64,000 bases of DNA from Selaginella moellendorffii (lineage: Eukaryota > Plantae > Lycopodiophyta): positions 1,504,733 through 1,568,732 of the forward strand of contig NW_003314264.1 of assembly GCF_000143415.4 (NCBI RefSeq), in the 5' to 3' direction. The position numbers and the translations under genes were made by a program. Shown piece after piece: positions 1,922 through 42,325 of the stretch. Each line of letters begins with the position of its first letter. Positions within the stretch are counted from its first letter, which is position 1. The notes under the pieces are model-generated. The model was not told the DNA's origin and made no database searches. It saw nothing but the letters and a program-made list of their open reading frames with translations.

Positions 1922-4900
1922 ATGAAGGAGCGTCGAGTGACAAATCGAGGCGCTCCGGCAGCTCCAGCTGCTGCTGCTGCGTCCCGGCGGAGAAAGAAGC
2001 CGGCATTTGATCCATCCGGCGGCTTCTTCTCTGGCGTCCGCATTGGAGCTGTCGCAGCATTCGCGATTTTTGTTCTCACTGCGATCACTCTCGTCGTTCT
2101 TCTCTCTGCTCTCTATCCTCGCGAAACTCCGAGATCCATCACGCCGGTGGCGCTTCCAAAGATCATGGATTTGCCTCAGGTAGGCATGAATTTCCACAGG
2201 TTTTTGCCTCAAATATTTATTTTCAATGAAGTTTCAAGGCGAGCACAAGGAGCGACTCTACTGGGGAACCTATAGACCGCATTTGTATCTTGGAATTCGA
2301 TCCAGGTAGAAATTCTCAGCTCTAAGTTTGATTGCTTTTCACGATGAACTTATAACATACTAGAACACCAAAATCATTGTTAGCTGGACTCATGTGGCTT
2401 GGTATCAAGGATGGATACTACGCTCTTCGTCACACCTGTGAAGACTCTGATGGACTTAAACGTTATGGTTGGGTTCGACACGATGGGATCTCTTATGGTC
2501 GCCAGGTATGCTGATTGTTATTGAGGCTTCTCTTGTTCTAACTATCTATTCAGGTGATTCTAGATCAAAATATGAATATCACCACTTTTTTCTCTAAGAG
2601 TTGGAATGACGGAAGTGGCTATGGAGGTGATTGGTCTGTCCGCGTGAATCTTCATCACAGCAGGTTTTGGTTTTTTCTAAAGAAAACCAGTTCTCATGCA
2701 GAGACTCGTTGTTCTGCAGTGAAATAAGTCGACTTCCGAATGGAGAGTCGTCTCTTTACTTTTACATTGCGGAGGAGGAAGGCAGCCAAATAAGAATATC
2801 GAGAAATGACGCATCTGGACTAGCTGCTTCGGGGCATAGACATGATATTGGACACTGGCAGATTCACATCAGTGCCGAGGTAGTCTTTTCTTTTCGTTTA
2901 TATCATTCGTCTTTATGCTCTTCGCGCAGAACAATACTTTTTTTCATTACGCTGGGTTCCGGACGGGAAACATGCACAATATAACACAGCTTGTCCAAAA
3001 TTCATTAATCGTTCAGGTTTTTCGTCATTTTTTTCTTTTTTCTTTTCCTCAAACACTCGCGCAGGAGCGTAAATTGCAACTACCTGATACTTATGAAAAA
3101 TCTTCAAATATAGTAGTTTTTCAGGTACGTAGTGTATGCATCCTCTATAAGTTCTCTGATTCCTCTATGATACTTTCAAGGTTTTAGGCCGCAACCATCT
3201 TCAGCTAGATGTGACTTTTCTAGCTGGTGTCGACGAGAAAAAGTTCTCGGTACAGTCTCGTCTTGACCGTTTATCTGGTGGGCAAACACTTTAATTTCTT
3301 CTCGCTACCTGTTCTTATACTGAATTTTAAAGGGATTCGATTGGATGAAACGTTAAGAGTGCAAGAGCAAATTTTTGATAAGCGTTTTGAGAACGCGTAC
3401 AAGCTGGATAACGAAGAGGTACTGGTAGTGATAAGAGCTGGAATACACAATCTTATGCTTCCTTTACATAGCTTTCTAGCTTTGGTGCTACCAACGCAGT
3501 GGAAATTGGCAAGGCTGCCCTCAGTAATCTTTTGGGAGGAATCAGCTACTTCTACGGCCAATCGCTTATTTCCATACCTTCAAAAGAGCAGGTACACGCT
3601 TCTTTCTCCATGTTTATTATCTAATACAACACATTTTAGAAACACCACCGAGAAAGTTTTTGGAAGTACTGGCCAGCTGCATTGTATAGTGCTGTTCCAT
3701 GCCGCTCTTTCTTCCCTCGAGGTTTTTTGTGGGATGAAGGCTTTCATCAAATAATAATAAGGTACATTGATACAGCCCATGCAAGAAATAATCTTTTTTC
3801 TGAAAGCAGTAGATGGGACCGAAACCTGACATACGATATCGTTGGGCACTGGTTAGACTTACTTAACGTCGACGGCTGGATTCCAAGGGAGCAGATTCTA
3901 GGAGAAGAAGCCCGAGTGTACTCCCTGTTTTGAGACGTTTCAAAGTGCTAACTGTTTACCTTGCAGAAGGGTTCCCGATGAGTATATTTTACAGCACACG
4001 GATAACGCGAACCCTCCAACGTTGTTTTTGCCATTGCATGGTCTGAAAGCTTGTTATCTCTTTTGTGACTTCTTTCTCTGCCCTGCTGCAGATATTGCAT
4101 TAGCATCACTAGAAAGTGGAAAAGAAAATAACGCTGAGAGGGCCTTCTTGGAAAAATCCTTCCCAAGGCTACAAGCGTGGTTTGGGTGGTTCAATAGAAC
4201 GCAAGCAGGTCTGTGTACTGTAATCTTCATTGAAGTTGAAGCTTCTTGTTGCGAACAGGTACATTTCCTGGGACTTACTATTGGCATGGAAGAAGTATTA
4301 CCGATAAGGAATTAAATGCCAAGGTAGGCACGTTTCATTCTGTGATTAACGCTCTAGACACCGGCTTCGTTAGAGTTTGTCGTCTGGTTTGGATGACTAT
4401 CCACGGGCTTCACATCCAAGTGCTGATGAGCGACACGTTGATTTACGTTGCTGGATGGCCTTGGCAGCGAAATCTATGGTTATGATTGCCAAAATCATCG
4501 GAGCACCACATGAAGTAAGGAAAAACTGGCACAGCATGGCTCGCAGTAACGATTTACTTTTTCAGAAATACGAGGCTATGTCACAGGTTTTGTCAGACTT
4601 TGATGTTCTTAACCAGGTCAGTGTCGATCTGTCCTCATGACCGAACTCACTCTATTGTTCTTAGCTCCACTACGATCGCAAGAGAGGACGTTACTACGAT
4701 TACGGCAATCATACTGAAAAAGTATCACGATAAGATCTCGATGATTTCAGCTCATTCTGTCCTCGACACAGGTGAAGCTGGAATGGGACAACTTCTTCGA
4801 CCCAAGAACCGGACAAGTACAGCAAGTTCTCCGCAGAGTCGTATCTGGACGTCCAAAGTTGCAGCTGGTTCCACAATTTGGCTACGTGAGCCTCTTCCCC

Positions 4901-7171: not shown

Positions 7172-7596
7172 CCCGGAACTAAAACCCCCCCAAGTTAAAA
7201 TCAAATTAAACCTCATCTTCGCGGTCCCAGCCGTTGGATCCCACCGACGGCCGCGATCGCTTCTAGGGCTTTTCCATTTTGCGAGGGAGATCCCATTTGT
7301 TACATCGACGTGGCCCAAAGGTCACGGCCAGGGTTCCAATTATTTCTCCCTCTCATTCCCAGCGCGGGGGGATCCAAGAACAGCGCTAGGGCTAGCAGTA
7401 GATCGATCGCGCCACGGCTCCTGGAAGAAATCGCGGCCTAGAATCACAGCAGCAGCACGGTGAGTTCTTCTCCTTCTTCCTCCTCCCCCTCTTCCGGGAT
7501 TTCTTGGAGAATCACAGTAGATTTTCAAGGCCAGGGCCGCCCCAGCAAGTGCGCCCGGGACGAGCCGCCACAATGCGGGTCTGTCTCGTAGAGCAA

Positions 7597-15609: not shown

Positions 15610-17862
15610 AACTTCTACAAAGAAGAAAGAAACAAACCAATGTGGTGGTGATCCAGCTCTGGCAATCACGAAGAATCTCACGAATCTCTGGGCCGATTCA
15701 ATCCAGAAAGCTTGAATCGTGGTCAATAGCGCTAGCGTTGGGCGATCTCCAATTGTGGAGAAGATCATCCACATCCAAGCGAGGAGCAAAGCACCGGCGA
15801 CCCAGAAAATCGCGGGGGATCTAGCGCAATTGCCATGATATCTTGGCTAGCAAGGAACTGGAAGAACAGCTCAAAGCTCCTCGCAAAGCCTCTTTTTTGA
15901 AGGGAATGAGACGTGTCCTTAAGCCTTGGCCCTTGCTAAGGACACCATGTCCCTCATCCTTGTCAATGACGGTAGTGAGGTGGTGGTGGTGGTCCTCCAG
16001 TTTTGTGGAGGTGGAGACAAAATATTTGGAGTCTTGATCGTCAATCCTGCTCTAGCCTACGCACATAAATGTTTCATGTTCCATTCATTAACACTCAACA
16101 TTGTAAACTTTGGTTTTTAGTTGTATTTTTATATTTCTTATTATATGGCTAACTTCATTATTACTATTAACTCATTAATCAAAGAAGTGATACAATCATT
16201 TGATCTAGTCATGGTCGTGTTGGAACACGTCTCCACAAGTCTTAGAGACGATCCCACACGGTTTCCGGCATTGGCAAAAACAACTCTTCCTCGAATTGAA
16301 TGTTTCATATCGCCGGAGATCGAGTTGGACCCCATTGGCTTCAATCTCTTTTTGTAATACCTGCGCATGCATGCTGGAAGTTTCTTCGAATTGGATTGAA
16401 TCACTTGACCACTGCATAAATTAATGTATAGCTTGTGAGAGACTCAGCTACGATTCCTGTCCTAGCAGCTGTTCTTTCGAGTCCAAGAGAAATTGATAGA
16501 AGCAACATTAAGATTGGATGGATGTTTGCCACCAAAAAAGTCTCCAATGGTACATTGCCAGGTATTTTGACGATATGAGATGCAAGCTTACATCTTTGAT
16601 CATGGATTTGTTTTGGAAGAGAAAATTCAACCAGCGTTGAGCCACTGTGGCTATTGCCAGCACCAAGGAAGGACAAAGAAAGTGATAAGTGAGTCCAACC
16701 AAGGCAGCCACAAATAATAAATTAGGACCACACCAAATGAGAAAATCCCATCAGGAATCAGCCATGTATGTGCAACTGCAAGGCTAGTGTAGACATATGA
16801 TCTGTGCTTTATTTCATTGTTGCTGCCTGTTTTTCCCCTGCCACTCCTGCCTGTTGGTACTGACTTGGTGGAGTGTAATAAAAGTAGTGGGAGAGATGGG
16901 AGAATGAAATTGATGTTATACTCTGCACTTTTGCTTGTCTTTTTGAAAGAAAAGAAAGAGAGAACCTCAGCAAAAACTTCCTCAGAGCCTTGCATCTGCT
17001 GTTTGAGCTTGCAAAAGCTGATAATGGGGGAGCACCCTTTCAATTGGGATAGATTTCACATCCCTGTCACAGTTGGTGGGCTTCTCTAGTTGCCTTTGAA
17101 GACAAAAAGTTTGTCCCTCTTGGTCTAAGGAGCAAAGCAAGATGCACATTTCACACAGCTAGCTGCACATACTGGTGTGCAGATCAAATGGACAAGCAAC
17201 TCCACTGTCTCAGGAGGCCCACATAGTTGCAGTGTACAGTGCTCTTTTACCTTTCACCTCTCAAGGATGAGGAGTGCTTTCTTGCCTTAGATGCAATTGC
17301 TGCTGCAGTTTTGGAAGTTGGAGTCAGAGAGGGGAGAGGAAGGGTTTGGAAGAATGCATACATGTTCAACCATACATGTTATCCAATTTGTCTCCATGCA
17401 GAGCTCAAGTTGCTGCTACACAAAATGTTGGGCGTGTCCAAAATTCTGTACAGCTTCACTCTCTGTTGAGTCCAAAATTATAGCAAGGATCAGCACAAGA
17501 TGATGATCCTCGTGGGAAGTTCAGCGACCAAACAATAAGAAAGTTGACAACCTTTTTCTCAAAAAGAAAAGTATGGTTCCAGGGTGCACATGAGAGTGTT
17601 TTGGAGGTCTGGAAGACACAGTTGGCCACCAACATTCAGAATTTCCGCTGCTGCACGTGTGGCAAGGACGAGAACCCTGATCAAATGGTGGTGGCCAGAA
17701 GATCGAAACGTACCCACACCTTCACGATTCGGTTCCAGAGTACAAAACCAAAAAAACAAAATGGGGAAAAGAAAGGTCAGCCATGTTTCATGTATAGCAG
17801 CTTTTTCTCTCTTTTCCTTCTGAGGAGAGCACATGAAGGCCACAAGGTCTAAGCATTCTTAC

Positions 17863-19971
17863 TTACAAACTAAACAAGCTCTCCGTTTTGCTAAATCCGC
17901 CATGGAAACCGCCAGTGTTCGAGCAGTGCAAGTTAGCGAGCAGAACGTATGCTGCTCCATACCCCGGATCCATCCCCAGGATTTGCCTGGTAGCACCAAG
18001 GCCGCCATGGATGCTGCTATGACTCCTTGACGCTCCAAGCAAGCACATCCAGTCCAAGCCATCGGCCTCGAAAGGCATGGTTTCGACGAGCTCCCCGGCC
18101 TTGGTAAGGCGCCCGGCACGAGCGAGCAAGTCCACCATGCATCGGTAGTGCTGCTTCGAGGGCTGAATCCCAAAGTCCACGCTCATCGACTGGAAGTATG
18201 ATCTTCCACTGCCGAGATCGCCCTGGTGGCTGGAAGCGACCAACACCGACGCGAAGCACGCATCGTCCGGGGCAAAAACCATCTTCATCCCGTGGAAAGT
18301 TTCGAAAGTCTGATTGCAGTGTTGCCTGCTTTGAGCTGACGCTGCAAGCACCGCATTGCAAGACACTACGTTTCGTTCCGGCATCTCTTTGAAGATCTTC
18401 CTGGCGTCTTTCACGAGCCCGTGTTGGATCGCGCACGTCCAGGAGACGACGTTCTTTTGTGGCATGGAGTTGAAAAACTCCTTTCCTTCGAAAATGCACC
18501 CGTTTAGCGTGTACGCAGCAAGCATGACGTTCCCTGTAACTACATTCCGCTGAGGAAATCTAAGGTAGAACTTTCTAGCCTCGTCCACGAGTCCACAGCG
18601 TGCATAAGCTTCCAGCATAGCGTTCCAAGACACCACGTCGTGCTGTGCCATGTCGCAATCGAACAGCTTCTTGGCCTCCTCCAAATGCCCAGTTCCGGCA
18701 AATGCCGCTAGCGTGGAATTCCACGTCACCAGATCCTTTGCTGACATGGACTTAAAGATTCCCAAAGCTCCGTGCAAGTCCTCCACATTAGCGTAAGCAC
18801 TAAGCATAGCGTTGTGCGAGAGTATAGTATGATGTGGCATGCTATCGTATAACGTCTTAGCTTCGTACAGATCCCCGCTTTGGGCAAATGCAAAGAGCAT
18901 CGTATTACACGACACTACGTTCTTATACGGCATACATTTGTACAGTATTTTAGCTTCCTCCAAGTTGAAAGCTTGTAGAATTGCAGCTATCATTGTATTC
19001 CAAATAATGATATTTACAAAGGGCAAGCTACAAAACAAGAGTCTTGCTGCCTCTAGATACCCGTGTTGCGCATAAGCGGCTAGCATTGCACTCGCTGTGA
19101 TTAAATCCTGCCAAGGCATACTATCATAAACTTGCTTTGTTTGCTCAAAATCTCCGACTAGCGAGAAGGCACACAACATACAAGTAAATGACACGGTATC
19201 TCTCACAGGCATCTTACTAAATATCACCTTCGCGAGAAGTATATGCCCGCTTTGAGCATAAGCCGAGAGCAGCACATTCCACGAGATAATATTCCACAAT
19301 GGCATCGACTCAAACAGTGACTCCACTTCTACCACTTGATCCTTGCGCGCGTAGCCAGACAAAATCGTGTTCCACGAGAATAAATCCGGGCCGTCTATCC
19401 GTCCAAATATCCTGTGGGCCTCGCCCAGATTCCCTTGCCGGGTATATGCCAGGATCATCGCATTGCAGCACACAACGTTGTGAAGCGGCATCGCGTCGAA
19501 AAGATACGCCGCATAATCCACCCTCCCTTCAGTGGCGCAGGCAAAGATCATGGTGGTCCAAGAGAAGACGTCTCTACGCGGCATCGCATGGAATATCCTC
19601 TGGCACTCGCAAAGATTCCCTTGTTGGGCAAATGCGTCGAGCATCGCATTCCAGGCGATTAGATTCCATCGCGGCATGGAATCGAAGACCTGCTTGGCTT
19701 GCCGCACAAATCCATTGCGGGAGTACGCGCAGAGCATGAGAACCCAAGAGAAAGAATCCCTCGTCGCGGCAGCCATGCCGCAAAAGAGCTGGAACGCAAG
19801 ATTGGGGCTCCCGCACCGCCCATACATCTCGATCAGCTTGTTACACACGAAGACATCGTCGATTAGCGCGGGATCCATGCGGGAGTGGATCAATCGCGCG
19901 TCGCTCAGGCTCCGGCAGCTACGCACGAGCTCCAGCCATCGAGTCCTGTCCATGCCATTCAAAATGCCCAA
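17863..19971 (-). CDS. PLS-class PPR protein with E domain, no DYW, intronless
   Basis: Long run of ~31-aa repeats (DVVSWNAMLxAYA); HYRCMVDLLARAG; WMCLLGA E-domain, AAYVLLAN. Confidence 0.93.
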   Translation of the reverse strand: MGILNGMDRTRWLELVRSCRSLSDARLIHSRMDPALIDDVFVCNKLIEMYGRCGSPNLAFQLFCGMAAATRDSFSWVLMLCAYSRNGFVRQAKQVFDSMPRWNLIAWNAMLDAFAQQGNLCECQRIFHAMPRRDVFSWTTMIFACATEGRVDYAAYLFDAMPLHNVVCCNAMILAYTRQGNLGEAHRIFGRIDGPDLFSWNTILSGYARKDQVVEVESLFESMPLWNIISWNVLLSAYAQSGHILLAKVIFSKMPVRDTVSFTCMLCAFSLVGDFEQTKQVYDSMPWQDLITASAMLAAYAQHGYLEAARLLFCSLPFVNIIIWNTMIAAILQAFNLEEAKILYKCMPYKNVVSCNTMLFAFAQSGDLYEAKTLYDSMPHHTILSHNAMLSAYANVEDLHGALGIFKSMSAKDLVTWNSTLAAFAGTGHLEEAKKLFDCDMAQHDVVSWNAMLEAYARCGLVDEARKFYLRFPQRNVVTGNVMLAAYTLNGCIFEGKEFFNSMPQKNVVSWTCAIQHGLVKDARKIFKEMPERNVVSCNAVLAASAQSRQHCNQTFETFHGMKMVFAPDDACFASVLVASSHQGDLGSGRSYFQSMSVDFGIQPSKQHYRCMVDLLARAGRLTKAGELVETMPFEADGLDWMCLLGASRSHSSIHGGLGATRQILGMDPGYGAAYVLLANLHCSNTGGFHGGFSKTESLFSL

Positions 19972-20042
19972 GAACCCTCGTTTAGACGGTGGAGATTTCA
20001 GCGCGTGGGACTAGTATCGCCAATTGTATGGCTGCGATGTAT

Positions 20043-20552
20043 TTACAGTGTCTTTCCGTGAAGAATGAGCTCAGTCGCTTCCTCGCTCTGGATCCACGGA
20101 TCATTGCGCTGGAGGAGGCGGAGGAGGTACTCGAACAGCGCGACCGGGCAGGGGATGAGGAGCCCGCCGCTGTAAGCGTAGCCAAATTCTTCCTCGGATT
20201 GCTGGAGCAGCGCCCCAAACACTGGATGCTGGAGGTAGCGCGTCTTGAGGACGAAGCGCTTGTGCTCCGGGCCGACGTAGACCGCGCAAGATCCTCGGTG
20301 GACGTCGCGCGGGATCGAAGGAGGTGATCTCCTGGCGATAATCTTCCTGTTCTTCGGCGACGCAGGGGAGGGCAAGGCGCAGCTCCTGGACGACGCCATC
20401 GCGCAAGAGAGGCGCTCGAATTTGTGGCACAGCCGCTTCAAGAGATTGGTGTGGTGATGGTGATGATCGTCCTGGTGGAGCTTGTGGTAGCGCGAGTGAT
20501 AATGCCGCCGGAAGAGCAGCGCCTTGAGCTTGATCTTCTTGAGCATCTTCAT
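20043..20552 (-). CDS. SAUR family auxin-responsive protein
   Basis: DVHRGSCAVYVGPEHKRFVL...HPVFGALLQQSEEEFGY...LLIPC. Confidence 0.92.
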   Translation of the reverse strand: MKMLKKIKLKALLFRRHYHSRYHKLHQDDHHHHHTNLLKRLCHKFERLSCAMASSRSCALPSPASPKNRKIIARRSPPSIPRDVHRGSCAVYVGPEHKRFVLKTRYLQHPVFGALLQQSEEEFGYAYSGGLLIPCPVALFEYLLRLLQRNDPWIQSEEATELILHGKTL

Positions 20553-21751
20553 CCTCTCCCTGCAGAGAAATATCGATCCTGCTCCTCCCCCCTAGAAATA
20601 TTTCGTCGCCATCGCGGCTCCTCTTACCCTTCCCTCTCGATTCGGCACGATTTCCCCTCGATTCCTTGCGGGAAATCGGAGGCCGTGCTAGAACACGCGC
20701 AAATCGACCCCGGGCACCTTGAGGAGGCCGCCAAACCAGAGAAGCACCGACAGGATCCGGAGCGACCACAACAGCCAAGATCTCTGGAAGAAGCACAAGA
20801 TCACAGGGTCCATGAAATGGAAGAAGCTAGAGAATCTAGAGCGAGCGATTGAAATGCGAGCGATCGCGACAAGGCACAGCAGCGATTCTCACGGGGAGTG
20901 GAGAGGGAAGGAGAGAAGCTGGAAGAACAACGCCATGATCGAAGCTCTTGCTTGCTCTTTCCAAGAAATAGGGCAAACCGGGGTTTAAATTGGCGTGCGC
21001 CGGACTCGAACAGGGGACCGTTTCATGCAAACCCGGTCAAAAGTGGCGTTGCATCGTATGAAGCGGCGCGTTGAAAAACGTGTTAGTTTTGGGTTCCTCT
21101 CCCGGGACGAACTCGTTTGATTAAAACTCCCCAAGGTTTAGTTCGCATGGATTCATAGTTAAGTGATATATCATACATTGTGTTAGATCAACTCGATTCT
21201 ATAAGGTTATAGATCTTCTCAATGCCAGAGCTCCCAGAGACAGTGAAGGACCATTGAGAGAGTGAGTGACACGGTTGATCCATCCACGCACGAAGGCAAC
21301 TTTTGGGCTGAAGAAAAGAAGAAAACGACCACTTGCGACCAAATTAAAATATAAAATAAATGAAGAATAAAAACCAACAATAATACAAAAATATAACATT
21401 AAAAAAAAAAAGTGTTAAAAATAATATTTTGGCTGCGGTCGACCAACACCACCACGAGTGCGAGGATATTTGGTTTTCCCATTGCAGCAAAAGGACTACA
21501 AAGTACAGTGGTACAAACAATATATGTTTTGTTTCCTTAGAAGCTTTGGTGGACCTTTGGATTCCCGCCACTCCTTTTCAATCAATCGACATAGCTTAGC
21601 TTGTGCTCGGCAGGGCCACTGGCAAGTTTTTAAAGTTGAAAAGCAAGATCAAAAGGGACCTGTCACATAGGGGCGCACGATAGATCGAGACGAGCGCGAG
21701 AAAAGTGATAGAAAACTATGTGACAATAGTACCTGGAGGAGAGCTCGAATT

Positions 21752-23437
21752 CTAAGTAGATTTTGCCGCTGGCCAAAGTGGATTCTCTAGCAAGTGTGAT
21801 GAGGCTTGGACACTCCTTACCACCACCTTGCAATCGGCATCAACTGTGTAGGAGATCTTCAGGCCCTCGAGAATCACATTGTAAAGCACGAGCTTTTCAT
21901 CCCCTCCTCCATTATGGAGCTCGGAAGAATCGCCATAGAGTGGCTGCGCGATCTCGCTGACCACTCCATCGTGCGGCCTCTGCCGCTGGCTCAAGGACCG
22001 AATATCGCAAGAGAGAACCTGCGCTATGAAATCATGTAGCTCTCTGGAACTGGAATAGAGTGAGAACCTTTCCTGCCGTTTTCCAACAGGAGACGCTTGT
22101 CAACGACAAAGCAAACAAAAGAAGGAAAGATAACTGCAAAGTGGTTTGCGTAAGGACTACGAGTGCGTACCATTTTGTTCCAGCACTCATCGAGGCCATT
22201 TAGAGAAGCTTCAGTGAAGGTGACGGAAGCCACGGCGAGTGGATCGTCCTCTCCGCCGGCCTGGAACAAAAGAGAGAAAAGATAAAATCTTGACAATCTT
22301 TCGCAAGTGATCACGGAATAAAATCGGGAAATCTTTGGCTCTTACATTGACCCACGTTGGTGCCGAAGCTTCTCTCACGGAATCGCAATATGGAAGATAA
22401 GGCTTTATGTCAAGCACGGGCTACAACATCACAAATACGACAAGCACCATAAAACCTGAGTAGAAAAGGAGGTCGAAGAATAGTATACCGTGCCATCAAC
22501 GAGATCAGCTCCGGAAAGCATTAGAATTCCATGCTCTAGACGTTCCACCTGAAGAAAAAACTTTTAAGATCAAACACGACAAGAATTTCGGGAAAAAGAT
22601 AAGAGACCTTTGCAACTGTTAAGCCGATAGGACACGGTCGATGTGGAGTTCTAGTCGCAAAAACTCCGAGTTTGGCACCATTGAGCCTTGGCACTCGTAC
22701 CTTTTACGCAAAGGAACTGGCTCAGCGCTAGAAATACAAAGAATGTGTTTGTTCTTGTCACCTTAGCCTTGAAGTCTCGATGGCTCGATAGCTCCCACAA
22801 GTTGTGTAAGTCTGTGTTCTCGTGAAAAACGTAGATTAACCAGCAGTGTGAGTACTGCTCAATCCCGTCCAGGGCCGCGGCAGGCACCCCGGAGGACAAA
22901 ACCAAGCGCGATTTAGCAAGTGTTACGAGGAGAGGTTGACGAGGAGTTCCATTTCTTCACAAAAAAAGAGAGAAAAACTTTTGTTCTCAAATAGAACTTA
23001 GATAAGAGTTTTGAGTACCTTGTTGAATAACATGATCTCATATACCCGATTGGTGTCATGGGAAAGGACGATGTGGGAGTTTTTCCAATGACATTGCATT
23101 GCATCAAGTTTTTTCGCAAGTCCTGAGCAATACTCAAAAGGTTAGAAAGGAAAACAAAAGGAAAGGAACGAAAATACTCACACGCTGTGCACGAATTCGG
23201 CCCGTCCTTTCTTCGGCTCTTTGCTTCTGGGATATTTGCAAAGCGTCGTCTGATTCAACGAGCTTGAGCTCCAGTTTGACACACTTTCTTGTCAATCTCC
23301 AAACTATATGATATGATCACACCAGAGAACGAAATTTAATCCTTTAGACACCCATCTTCCAAAAGAATTCGCGTACCTTGAATAAGCAAAGCTGTCGCAG
23401 TGGAAACTGAAACCACCGCTATAGCCCATCTCATCAT
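21752..23437 (-). CDS. tRNA (adenine(37)-N6)-methyltransferase, TrmO/TsaA family
   Basis: PIGYMRSCYSTR|NGTPRQPL, YSHCWLIYVFH, KVRVPRLNG..GVFATRTPHRPCPIGLT, DLVDGT|PVLDIKPYLPYCD; N-terminal hydrophobic MMRWAIAVVSVST. Confidence 0.9.
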
Positions 23438-25456
23438 TTCCGTGGCCTAGAGCTTAGGGTTCTAGCCTTTCTCGTGTCACTAGCGTTGACTTGGGCGTTG
23501 ACTAGTTGACTTTTCAGCCAGCTACTGGCCGATCGAAGCGTTCGCAGCTCGCCATCTAAAATGGCCTTGGCCATTTCTCGTCGCGGTTCGTGCACAATGC
23601 CGTGGACATCTCCTGCCTACAAGGAAAACAGTGATTGGATTTTAGCAAAGCTTTGCGAGAAAACTTTACCAAGTCCGCTGCTACATATTTCTCGATAAGA
23701 TTGTCGACCTGGGAGAGGATTTCTAGTAGGGCGCATCGATCTTTGTGTTGGTTATCTTGATCCCAGGAAAAATTGCCGCTCCCAGCGGAGCTCGCGTCCA
23801 GTCTCTCAAGTTCTGCCGAGAAAACTTGAATTAGTAGCAAAAGGAAGAACAGTACCTTCGGGGGTTTTTGCGCAAAGAACTCGAGCAAAACTGCGAAGGC
23901 CGGGTGGAATTCCATTCGGATTTGAGTTTATATCCCTGAAGAAACAAGAACAAAAGACAAAAGTGGGACTCCGTAAGAATATGCTCTTACTGGATGACAA
24001 AAGCTTTTCCCATACTGCCATCTTCTTCCTCTGTTATTTTGATCTTGTTCCTGGAGAAGACGTCAAGTTTTGCGTCGTAGAGCGGATCGTCTGGGGAGAT
24101 GGTCACCCAGATTTCCGCCTGCGAGCAAAGTCTCAAGTGGCAAGATGACAGTTGGTGTGAAGTTTTACCTCGTCAAAGGGATTGTAAGAAAGAGCGAATC
24201 CATAGTCCACAGCCAGTGTAACATTTGGAAGCTGGCCATAGCTGATGAACACCTATACTTGAGATTAATTTCGGGACAACAGTGATGCAAAGTAATCTTA
24301 CTTCATCACCAGTAGCGTAATCTCGATCTGCTATAACCTGAAAGATGCAAGGGTCAGTACATTGCTTTCAGAGAAAAAGGCGAAGGAACCATACTACGAC
24401 GCAGTTTTTATCGGGGTCATGCGAAAGAATAGACTCGCACTTCCAGTCGTGATTGATGAGATCAACGTAAGGAACCTGGTAAAAAATTCCATGGATGAGA
24501 AAGTGAAACTCTATCGAATGAGATCACCATTCCCAGCTCGCAGATGTCCGTCACTCGCCAAGAGCGCGTCGCCACTGTAAAAAACTTGCTCGAGAAATCA
24601 AGAAGAAAAACATTTACTTACCTATCGAGTATGCGTGCTTGAAGGCATCGTAAGACGCAGTTTCTCCAAAGATATGGCGACAACGAGAGATTGCCTGCGA
24701 GAAAAAAATTAAAAATCCACAAATTTGAGTTAGCACCGAAAGAAGATGATCCATTTGTGATACAAACGCTCTGGACGTCCGAAAATTCCATATCCAGCCA
24801 CCTCTCCCGTTGCGTAGTCTTGAAATAAACCGGACTGTGCCTCACACATTGAAGCTCTTCCTGCTTCCAAAACACCTGGAGCGCTACAAAACTAAGAACA
24901 CGAGGGAGAAGAAAATGGTAGACTTAACTGTGTTGTTTAGTTCAACCAGCGAGGGAAGAATTCCCATGTAAGGATCCCAGGCTGAGTTCTACGATAGTTT
25001 CTTAGCTCTCGACTTTGCGATGAATGAAGAACACTAGTACCTGGCCTTTGTTCCACTGGGCGAGGATGAAAAGGGCCAGCCGCGACCATTCCGTGGCCTG
25101 CGCAGGCAAAAATCTCGCGACTTCGTCTTGTAGGCATCGAGAAGTGATCATCTGTCAAAGGAGGTAAGCAATGCACATATGTAGAACAAGCGAGCATCTT
25201 ACAAGACTAGGTGGAACTTCCAGCATGCGCTCTCCAGCTCGAATTGGACGAGACGCAAACATTCCACTGCAAAGCATTGATCTTGCTATCAAATGGGGCA
25301 AAGAAAAACGAGTGAAAGATCGCGATGCTCTCACCGCCCGGAAGAACAAGCGCCAATCGAGAGCGCCGATTGCTGCGCATTGCTTAGGGCGCCTTGCGTC
25401 CTCAGCCACGAGAGGAAATGGCTCGTCTTCGAGCCAAGCGCCTTTGAATCGAGCAT
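23434..25456 (-). CDS. SET-domain protein lysine methyltransferase (Rubisco LSMT/SETD3-like)
   Basis: FLSWLR, MFASRPIRAGERMLEVP, VPYVDLINHD, VIADRDY, VFISYGQLPNVTLAVDYGF; last exon AGDVHG...REMAKAILDGELRTLRSASSWL...PRK* ending 23434. Confidence 0.85.
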
Positions 25457-25636
25457 TCCTTGCTCAGACCCTCAGATCCTCCGTCATCCAGCGGCTCAAA
25501 ACCACACACGTGGAACGATCTTACGGTCGGAATCCACCCTATCCAACGGCCGCAGGGTTTTAGATCCGACGGCTAGAGCTCCAGTGAAGGCATTAGGGTT
25601 TTACGATCTTTAGGGTTCTTGGAGGGCGGCCGCAAA

Positions 25637-26537
25637 ATGGCGGAGAGGGGAGGAGGAGGAGGAGGCGAGCAGCGCGAGCGCGGTGGATTCGGCCGGGGCT
25701 TCGGCGGTCGCGGCAGGGATCGCGGCCGTGGCGACCGCGGCCGCGGCCGGCGCTCCAGGCGCGCGGACGAGGAGGAGAAATGGGTGCCGGTGACCAAGCT
25801 CGGCCGCCTCGTCAAGGACGGTAAGATTAGGAGCCTCGAGCAGATCTATCTCTTCTCCCTCCCCATCAAGGAGCACCAGATCGTCGAGTTCTTCCTCGGC
25901 AGCGCGCTCAAGGACGAGGTGATGAAGATCATGCCAGTGCAAAAGCAGACGCGCGCCGGGCAGAGGACGCGATTCAAGGCCTTTGTGGTGGTGGGCGACA
26001 ACAATGGCCACGTTGGTCTGGGCGTCAAGTGCAGCAAGGAGGTGGCGACCGCGATCCGAGGCGCGATCATCCTCGCCAAGCTCGCGGTGATCCCAGTGAG
26101 GCGAGGCTACTGGGGAAACAAGATAGGCAAGCCACACACCGTCCCGTGCAAGGTCACTGGGAAATGCGGCTCGGTGACTGTCCGGATGGTGCCAGCGCCC
26201 CGAGGAGCTGGGATCGTTGCCGCTCGCGTCCCCAAAAAGGTGCTCCAGTTTGCCGGGATCGAGGACGTTTTCACCTCGTCGCGCGGATCGACCAAGACTC
26301 TGGGAAACTTCGTCAAGGTGAGGATTGATCTGATCGTTCTTCTTTCACTCTCGACGAGTTTTTCTTGGTTTTTGGCAGGCTACGTACGACTGTCTGTTGA
26401 AGACGTATGGGTTCCTCACCCCGGATCTGTGGAAGGAGACCCGGTTTACCAAGTCGCCGTTCCAGGAGTTCACGGACTACCTGTCCAAGCCTACCAAGTT
26501 GGTGATCGAGGACGTCGAGAAGGCCCCGGTGTACTGA
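25637..26537 (+). CDS. RPS2: 40S ribosomal protein S2 (uS5), intron 26318-26378
   Basis: RG-rich N-terminus, [39 protein letters not shown]|[18 protein letters not shown]. Confidence 0.98.
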
Positions 26538-26752
26538 GTAGTACTACTACTATTCCCTGTTTCATCTTTTTGGAGCTTGAATACCAAAGTTTTTGATTTG
26601 CTCAGTGATATCGAGTAAGATGATCTTCTAGACAAGCTGCCAGAAACGAAGAAAGAGAGAGAGATCAGAGTTTTAGATCGAGCTCATGTTCTTTCTTACA
26701 TCGAGAACTGGAAAGCCTGGAGTTTTCTCGTAAGCGTTTGGGAGAAGTTGGA

Positions 26753-27493
26753 TCATCCGGCGAGGGGATTCGAGTGCATGGTGACTCTGTTTAGCCTGAT
26801 CTCCGCCAAGGGACGATCTCCAGCACCTGTTTGTGTCTGTAGCGAAGAAACTGTGAAGAACACTATCGATCGAAAGCAAGAAAAGCGTGTTAACCTTCTC
26901 CATGAGGTCGAGAACTTCGAAGCCATGGATGACTTTGCCAAAGACGGTGTAGAGGCCGTTTAAGTGGGGCTGCTTGGCATACGTGACGAAGAACTGGCTC
27001 CCATTCGTGTTTGGTCCGCTGTTGGCCATGGCAAGGATTCCTCTCGCGTTGTGCTGATACAGGAAAGAGAGTAAGAACAATCGCTCAGCTCAATCTTATC
27101 ATCCAAGGAGAAGAAAGAAAGAAAGAAGAAAATTTTCTACCTTGAGAGACTCGCGAATCTCATCGTTAAACTTGCGACCCCAAATGCTGGTACCTCCGCG
27201 CCCAGTTCCAGTGGGATCGCCTCCTTGGATCATGAATCCTTTGATGTTGCGGTGGAAGATTGTGCCGTCGTAGTAGCCGCTCGCGCACAGCGCCAGGAAA
27301 TTCTACACCTCCAACATGAAATTCTTTCAGTCTCTCTCGCGCTCTCTCTTCTAAGATTTTACCTCGGCTGTCTTTGGGACCTCGTCGCAGAAGATCTCGC
27401 ACTTGATATCTCCCAGATTGGTGTGCAATGTGATCGACTACAATGAAACAAGAAGATTTCAGCTCCAATCGCAGCAGAGACTCTGCTCACCAT
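26753..27493 (-). CDS. CYP18-1: Cyclophilin PPIase (PPIL3/CYP18-1 type)
   Basis: ATG|intron|[62 protein letters not shown]. Confidence 0.93.
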
Positions 27494-42084: not shown

Positions 42085-42325
42085 CCAAGTCAGTCAACCC
42101 ATCAGTCAACGCGGTCACCGATTGCTTCGATACGACGTCAGTCAACACGAAAGTACACATGCTGACTGTAGTGTACATCTGGACTCTGGACGCTACGTCG
42201 GCGGCAAAATGGCTGACACGTATCACTTCCAAGTCACAAGTCAACCATCAGTCAACGCACAATGACCCGCATTGGATAATATCCAGTCAACATGCTGACT
42301 GTAGTGTACATCTGGACGCCACGTA
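42085..42325. repeat. Two-copy tandem repeat rich in AGTCAA (W-box TTGACT on minus strand)
   Basis: acatgctgactgtagtgtacatctggac at ~42157 and ~42290; caagtca...gtcaacc.atcagtcaacgc duplicated. Confidence 0.8.

Follow-up and report, generated by a model that had tools for sequence, protein, structure and literature searches.

The TrmO promoter of Selaginella moellendorffii probably lies within the last coding exon of an abutting SET-domain gene

Introduction

Translation by termination and restart has viral examples, among them calicivirus TURBS and influenza B M2. In prokaryotes, termination-reinitiation occurs at AUGA and UGAUG overlaps (PMC6728339). Polycistronic nuclear genes have been described from green algae (PMC7896298), and they are reported to be translated by leaky scanning (PMC11291117). 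A restart after an open reading frame (ORF) of 433 codons is unusual in eukaryotes unless a special element is present (PMC5972666). Here we analyze a stop/start overlap in a stretch of 64,000 nucleotides (nt) from the lycophyte Selaginella moellendorffii (the window; contig NW_003314264.1, positions 1,504,733 to 1,568,732). The overlap joins a gene for a SET-domain methyltransferase (SET) to a gene for a TrmO/TsaA-like tRNA methyltransferase (TrmO); the two are minus-strand genes arranged head to tail, with SET upstream. The TrmO (YaeB) family comprises tRNA m6t6A37 methyltransferases (PMC4132733).

A first-pass annotation of this DNA had offered two readings of the junction, an operon-like restart of translation or a TrmO promoter inside the SET exon. 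Our analysis favors the second: with a probability of roughly 0.6, the promoter and leader of TrmO are embedded in the last SET exon of a gene pair that has no spacer. The promoter reading is the better supported one, by a telobox, by an ATG-free stretch of 117 nt and by the lack of conservation of both the overlap and the gene pairing, whereas the operon-like restart is not supported, given a polymorphic overlap, 25 upstream ATGs and no UGGGA-type motif.

Results

The SET stop codon overlaps the TrmO start codons

The window represents the haplotype of S. moellendorffii scaffold GL377568.1, to which its positions 17752-27437 are identical over 9,686 bases. The allelic scaffold of the second haplotype, GL377590.1, differs from the window by about 2% over the SET-TrmO locus. 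Models of both genes were derived exon by exon from phases and per-exon translations, while full-length comparisons of TrmO were made with the annotated protein of 372 amino acids (aa). The RNA data are assembled Logan contigs from four runs of four studies, whose spliced form identifies them as RNA-derived. Contigs of this kind show no transcript starts, ends or single molecules, and their assembly from short words cannot phase a 240-nt exon. Contig depth was similar for SET and TrmO in all four runs; such depths are unable to rank the two genes and were not used as evidence. The elements of the junction are as follows.

23434..25456, minus strand: SET-domain (Rubisco-LSMT-like) methyltransferase gene, 14 coding exons and 433 codons in the window haplotype, from the exon-by-exon phase walk
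21752..23437, minus strand: TrmO/TsaA-like tRNA methyltransferase gene with 9 coding exons; its 372-aa product is the same as EFJ35499.1 / XP_024524333.1
23434..23616, minus strand: last SET coding exon (AGDVHG...SRPRK), 60 codons, stop TGA at 23436-23434; it also carries the TrmO leader
23617..23669, minus strand: last SET intron, 53 nt, GT..AG; RNA joint 23616/23670 in 4 of 4 runs
23431..23437, minus strand: ATGATGA, two TrmO ATGs that overlap the SET TGA and a second in-frame TGA at 23433-23431

The coding sequences of SET and TrmO overlap by 4 nt in the window haplotype. The last SET exon was annotated as beginning at the acceptor ttgtag/GCAGGA, in phase 0 after ...AADL, and the RNA confirms this: the joint 23616/23670 is present in contigs of four runs from four studies. 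The annotated geometry of the stop also holds, in the window haplotype only. There the SET stop TGA (23436-23434) lies inside the pair of ATGs (23437 and 23434) that opens TrmO, and the spacer is zero. The joint 23303/23377, like 23616/23670, occurs in all four runs. The presence of joints on both sides indicates that the block 23377-23616 is one continuous internal exon. Furthermore, two contigs of about 2 kb (runs X2 and X6) span TrmO exons into SET exons, and one of them reaches 25480. Contigs that bridge both genes fit overlapping transcripts and read-through RNA alike.

An alternative acceptor 4 nt downstream (gcag/GAGATG) had been proposed to toggle the overlap. It would indeed place the SET stop at 23556; its use is not seen in the best 15 of 23 RNA joints.

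Two further possibilities were considered and rejected. A fusion protein produced by skipping of the shared exon would meet a stop almost immediately, since the phase is 0 at the end of SET exon 13 but 1 at the entry to TrmO exon 2; the corresponding joint is absent among the best 15 of 23 RNA joints. Read-through of the SET stop codon is ruled out by the two consecutive in-frame TGAs.

The overlap is polymorphic within the species

The two haplotypes differ at the SET stop.

23491..23493, minus strand: polymorphic codon, CAA (Gln) in the window, TAA stop in GL377590.1, as also in the X10 RNA contig

Where the last SET exon of the window reads GCC CAA, that of GL377590.1 reads GCA TAA. SET of GL377590.1 is thereby shorter by 19 codons and stops 53 nt short of the TrmO ATG, and the annotation of this scaffold agrees with the spacer (coding sequence end at 3947, next start at 4001, in the numbering of the GL377590.1 stretch). 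The TAA makes the overlap polymorphic within the species. A contig of run X10 carries the same four changes as GL377590.1, while at the last SET exon the contigs from the remaining runs match the window. The haplotypes also differ at codon 25 of TrmO (T/K). This comparison indicates that both alleles are transcribed and spliced alike. As the expressed allele with a 53-nt spacer demonstrates, the locus does not need the precise ATGA geometry. The overlap probably arose in one haplotype as a by-product of dense gene packing and does not serve to couple the genes; its presence depends on a single codon, CAA or TAA.

The overlapping ATG opens a conserved TrmO protein

The TrmO side of the junction comprises these features.

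23377..23437, minus strand: TrmO coding exon 1, MMRWAIAVVSVSTATALLIQ, membrane helix
23304..23376, minus strand: TrmO intron 1, 73 nt, contains ATTAAA at 23340-23335

The ATGs at 23437 and 23434 open TrmO, which reads MMRWAIAVV..., and an in-frame stop lies 4 codons upstream of the ATG at 23437. We compared TrmO of land plants, including Marchantia, Sphagnum, the fern Adiantum, seed plants and ORFs from transcriptomes. These proteins have three elements in common, about 95-105 residues ahead of the NGTPRQ core: a membrane helix at the N-terminus, a coiled coil and the motif AERxGRIRAQ. Selaginella TrmO aligns from its first residues (MMRWAIAVVSVS versus LLRWAAAAVAAV in Marchantia). This conserved N-terminus indicates that the ATG that overlaps the SET stop is the genuine TrmO start.

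In a scan of single exons, Pfam domain PF01980 (TrmO_N) was found only on TrmO exon 4 (39.2 bits) and exon 5 (38.9 bits), with a gathering cut-off of 26.8, and the annotated TrmO products also carry it. The domain begins near residue 98 of the Selaginella protein, which shares 36-46% identity with plant proteins that bear the name tRNA (adenine37-N6)-methyltransferase. By its domain content the product belongs to the TrmO/TsaA (PF01980) family, and its predicted activity is N6-methylation of t6A37.

The RefSeq TrmO model of GL377590.1 (XP_024535499.1, 275 aa) starts at the second ATG, takes exon 2 in the wrong frame and leaves out exons 3, 5 and 7. A search for contigs encoding this 275-aa model found none; it is a mis-spliced prediction.

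A promoter-type motif precedes TrmO inside the SET exon

The first-pass annotation had noted a telobox and three gtcaac repeats in the last SET exon, and both were recovered.

23454..23461, minus strand: telobox-type motif AACCCTAA, the same in the two haplotypes and 17 nt upstream of the TrmO ATG
23485..23511, minus strand: three AGTCAAC copies, with the W-box core (TTGACT) on the other strand; they double as coding sequence for part of QLVNAQVNA

The motif AACCCTAA occurs nine times in the window, versus 1.58 copies expected, and none of 100 shuffles reached nine. Each of the other eight copies is followed within 80 nt by a long ORF that starts with ATG; two of them precede RPS2. Teloboxes are found mainly in 5' untranslated regions (UTRs) and are depleted in coding sequences and 3' UTRs (PMC3022908). 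Among promoters, those of cytosolic and mitochondrial ribosomal protein genes are enriched in teloboxes, and this includes S. moellendorffii (PMC3212954). A tRNA modification enzyme would suit this translation-related class of telobox genes.

The last 117 nt before the TrmO ATG contain no ATG, a sign that is weak alone because chance produces it in about one in six cases. TrmO mRNA contigs of another plant begin 26-47 nt before the ATG.

AGTCAAC is not above chance in the window as a whole (10 copies versus 7.9 expected), which leaves the local cluster of three without explanation. Another cluster of this motif, at 42092-42291 on the plus strand, has six copies that form two units, each about 146 bp long.

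Several observations weigh against an embedded promoter. The motif before TrmO is the variant GAACCCTAA and not the full AAACCCTA, although one of the two copies before RPS2 is of the same variant. The case for the telobox draws on eight sites that were assessed from raw ORFs instead of mapped transcription starts. The RNA data consist only of assembled contigs, so that no transcription start or poly(A) site is observed, and in two runs (X2 and X6) the contigs are unbroken from SET exons into TrmO exons. Finally, the region from the SET stop to the TrmO 3' end has no AATAAA and no ordinary AT-rich 3'-end region, which fits read-through SET-TrmO RNAs.

RNA 3' ends and a shared transcription unit

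Two features mark the 3' side of TrmO.

21660..21732, minus strand: intron in the TrmO 3' UTR, 73 nt, just past the stop at 21752, spliced in 4 of 4 RNA runs
21360..21460, minus strand: AT-rich 3'-end region; TrmO RNA contigs end at 21414-21461

From the SET stop to the TrmO 3' end, the only hexamer that resembles a poly(A) signal is the ATTAAA at 23340-23335 in TrmO intron 1. The contigs end in the sole zone that is strongly AT-rich, 21440-21360. The 3' end of SET may sit in TrmO intron 1 or be shared with TrmO.

These results bear on the alternative that survives best, which we nevertheless regard as unlikely: a shared transcription unit without coupling, in which all SET mRNAs reach the TrmO poly(A) site and give SET only, and TrmO is made from an RNA of an internal promoter. 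The points in favor of the embedded promoter apply here as well, and the unbroken contigs and the missing 3'-end signal near the SET stop can be added to them. However, such SET mRNAs would have an intron-rich 3' UTR of 1.4 kb and would be prone to nonsense-mediated decay, and the ATTAAA in TrmO intron 1 could itself be the SET poly(A) signal.

SET translation is not expected to feed TrmO

A true dicistron would be one capped RNA of 2.7 kb on which ribosomes terminate at the SET UGA and restart at the overlapping AUG. The geometry of ATGATGA is that of known stop-restart sites, the region past the SET stop lacks a clear poly(A) signal, and the block 23377-23616, spliced on both sides as an internal exon, is crossed by the contigs of about 2 kb from X2 and X6. 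This alternative is quite unlikely on several grounds. The bridging contigs were assembled from words too short to phase the 240-nt exon. The SET mRNA has 25 ATGs before the TrmO ATG, which excludes leaky scanning, and the upstream ORF is long (433 codons), while the last SET exon contains no TGGGA, i.e. no restart motif of the UGGGA type (calicivirus TURBS-like). The other haplotype is expressed and stops 53 nt upstream, so that the geometry is not conserved, and a promoter-type motif lies 17 nt upstream of the TrmO ATG. A stop followed by nine spliced introns would, moreover, expose the RNA to nonsense-mediated decay.

The gene pairing gives the same answer. Conserved synteny had been suggested as a check of an operon-like pair, and SET and TrmO are not kept together in either of the two plants inspected. 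In Marchantia the gene upstream of TrmO is a UbiA gene, 3.5 kb away, and in Sphagnum no gene is called within 10 kb of TrmO. tRNA and Rfam scans of 20-26 kb gave no match, and the locus is thus not a dicistron of the tRNA-mRNA or snoRNA type.

Together, these results indicate it is improbable that this lycophyte locus makes a true dicistronic SET-TrmO mRNA on which ribosomes reach TrmO by restarting after the 433 codons of SET. If it did, the haplotypes with a 4-nt overlap and a 53-nt spacer would be a built-in natural experiment on restart geometry in plants.

Highly improbable is an artefact of the gene models, in which SET ends at 23556 through the acceptor 4 nt downstream or TrmO starts at an internal ATG: the tandem acceptor exists, the GenBank SET model on GL377568.1 ends at 23447 in another frame and the mis-spliced RefSeq TrmO model on GL377590.1 begins at the second ATG, but all four runs show the upstream acceptor, RNA contigs cover the block 23377-23616 without a break, and the N-terminal helix, whose coding sequence starts at 23437, is kept throughout the land plants.

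The SET gene

The phase walk starts at the ATG at 25456 and finds the SET frame open through all exons, with GT..AG at every intron. Most of the exon joints are present in RNA contigs. The introns are very short, 43-73 nt (the 43-nt intron is at 23813-23855), and are spliced in the contigs. For the locus product called in GenBank, the precomputed Pfam hits are PF00856 (SET, unmarked) and PF09273 (Rubis-subs-bind, weak). An exon-by-exon Pfam scan of the short SET exons, including the last one, gave no match, and neither did PDB sequence searches with exons 5 and 8. A word search with the 60-aa last exon found no candidate for a comparison of the SET C-terminus across species.

Upstream of codon 415 the haplotypes differ in SET by 10 synonymous and 5 non-synonymous changes. 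Judged from these changes, SET is a constrained, functional gene, and its last 19 codons are dispensable.

The GenBank SET models (358 and 378 aa) begin at the exon-2 ATG at 25262 and omit exon 1 with its ATG at 25456; exon 1 is covered by RNA contigs (25335-25484). The model on GL377568.1 with its end at 23447 apparently avoids an overlap of coding sequences.

Neighboring genes

SET and RPS2 (uS5) are divergent, with about 180 bp between their ATGs (window 25456-25637) and teloboxes at 25593 and 25610 in between. This intergenic stretch is probably a shared bidirectional promoter. RPS2, SET and TrmO form a row of three translation-related or methyltransferase genes. On the other side of TrmO, also on the minus strand, the TAA (20045-20043) of a SAUR-like gene of 169 aa is followed after 89 nt by the ATG (19953) of a single-exon PPR-like gene of 696 aa. 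In the other haplotype, GL377590.1, a telobox lies in the SAUR-PPR spacer (7442-7448 in its own numbering). The 89-nt spacer of this second pair suggests that near-zero spacers are a property of this genome region.

Discussion

The reading that we prefer, a TrmO promoter embedded in the SET exon, can be put as follows. Two co-oriented nuclear genes of the very compact S. moellendorffii genome are packed without a spacer, and the core promoter of TrmO and its short leader would lie inside the last coding exon of SET. TrmO would have a capped mRNA of its own for translation, and the start of this mRNA most likely falls in the 120 nt or so before the ATG. In the window, the SET frame lacks the TAA of the other haplotype and continues for 19 more codons, through the TrmO leader, to the TGA of ATGATGA. 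SET transcripts must end downstream of the TrmO start, and may do so at a weak site in intron 1 or at the TrmO poly(A) site. Some RNAs may be dicistronic in structure, and TrmO protein is not expected from them.

The locus illustrates how far gene packing can go in Selaginella, with a leader and a likely promoter within the coding exon of a neighbor. The analysis also corrects public gene models: the GenBank SET models lack exon 1, one of them ends in a different frame, and a RefSeq model of TrmO is spliced wrongly. Were read-through SET-TrmO RNAs the main form, which is unlikely on present evidence, the haplotypes would offer a natural test of stop-restart in a plant.

How does the locus compare with known systems? 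With viral and prokaryotic termination-reinitiation it shares the stop/start overlap itself (ATGATGA, 23437-23431), in the window haplotype only. It differs in that no UGGGA-type motif is present, the overlap is polymorphic and TrmO is a eukaryotic nuclear gene with a promoter-like motif of its own. The green-algal polycistronic nuclear genes resemble it in having two ORFs at a minimal distance on RNA assemblies of the green lineage. However, the Selaginella case is known from contigs, and an upstream ORF of 433 codons with 25 ATGs before the TrmO ATG makes leaky scanning unworkable. The TrmO (YaeB) family is represented here by the TrmO_N domain on exons 4 and 5, to which the plant proteins, including that of Selaginella, add an N-terminal membrane helix and a coiled coil outside of TrmO_N. 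Abutting tandem genes of compact eukaryotes are likewise co-oriented, without a spacer and with a promoter-type motif inside the upstream coding exon; the difference is that in one haplotype the SET and TrmO coding sequences overlap by 4 nt, which is rarer than an overlap of UTRs. The locus is a case of ordinary compaction, a new example of a gene packing that is already known.

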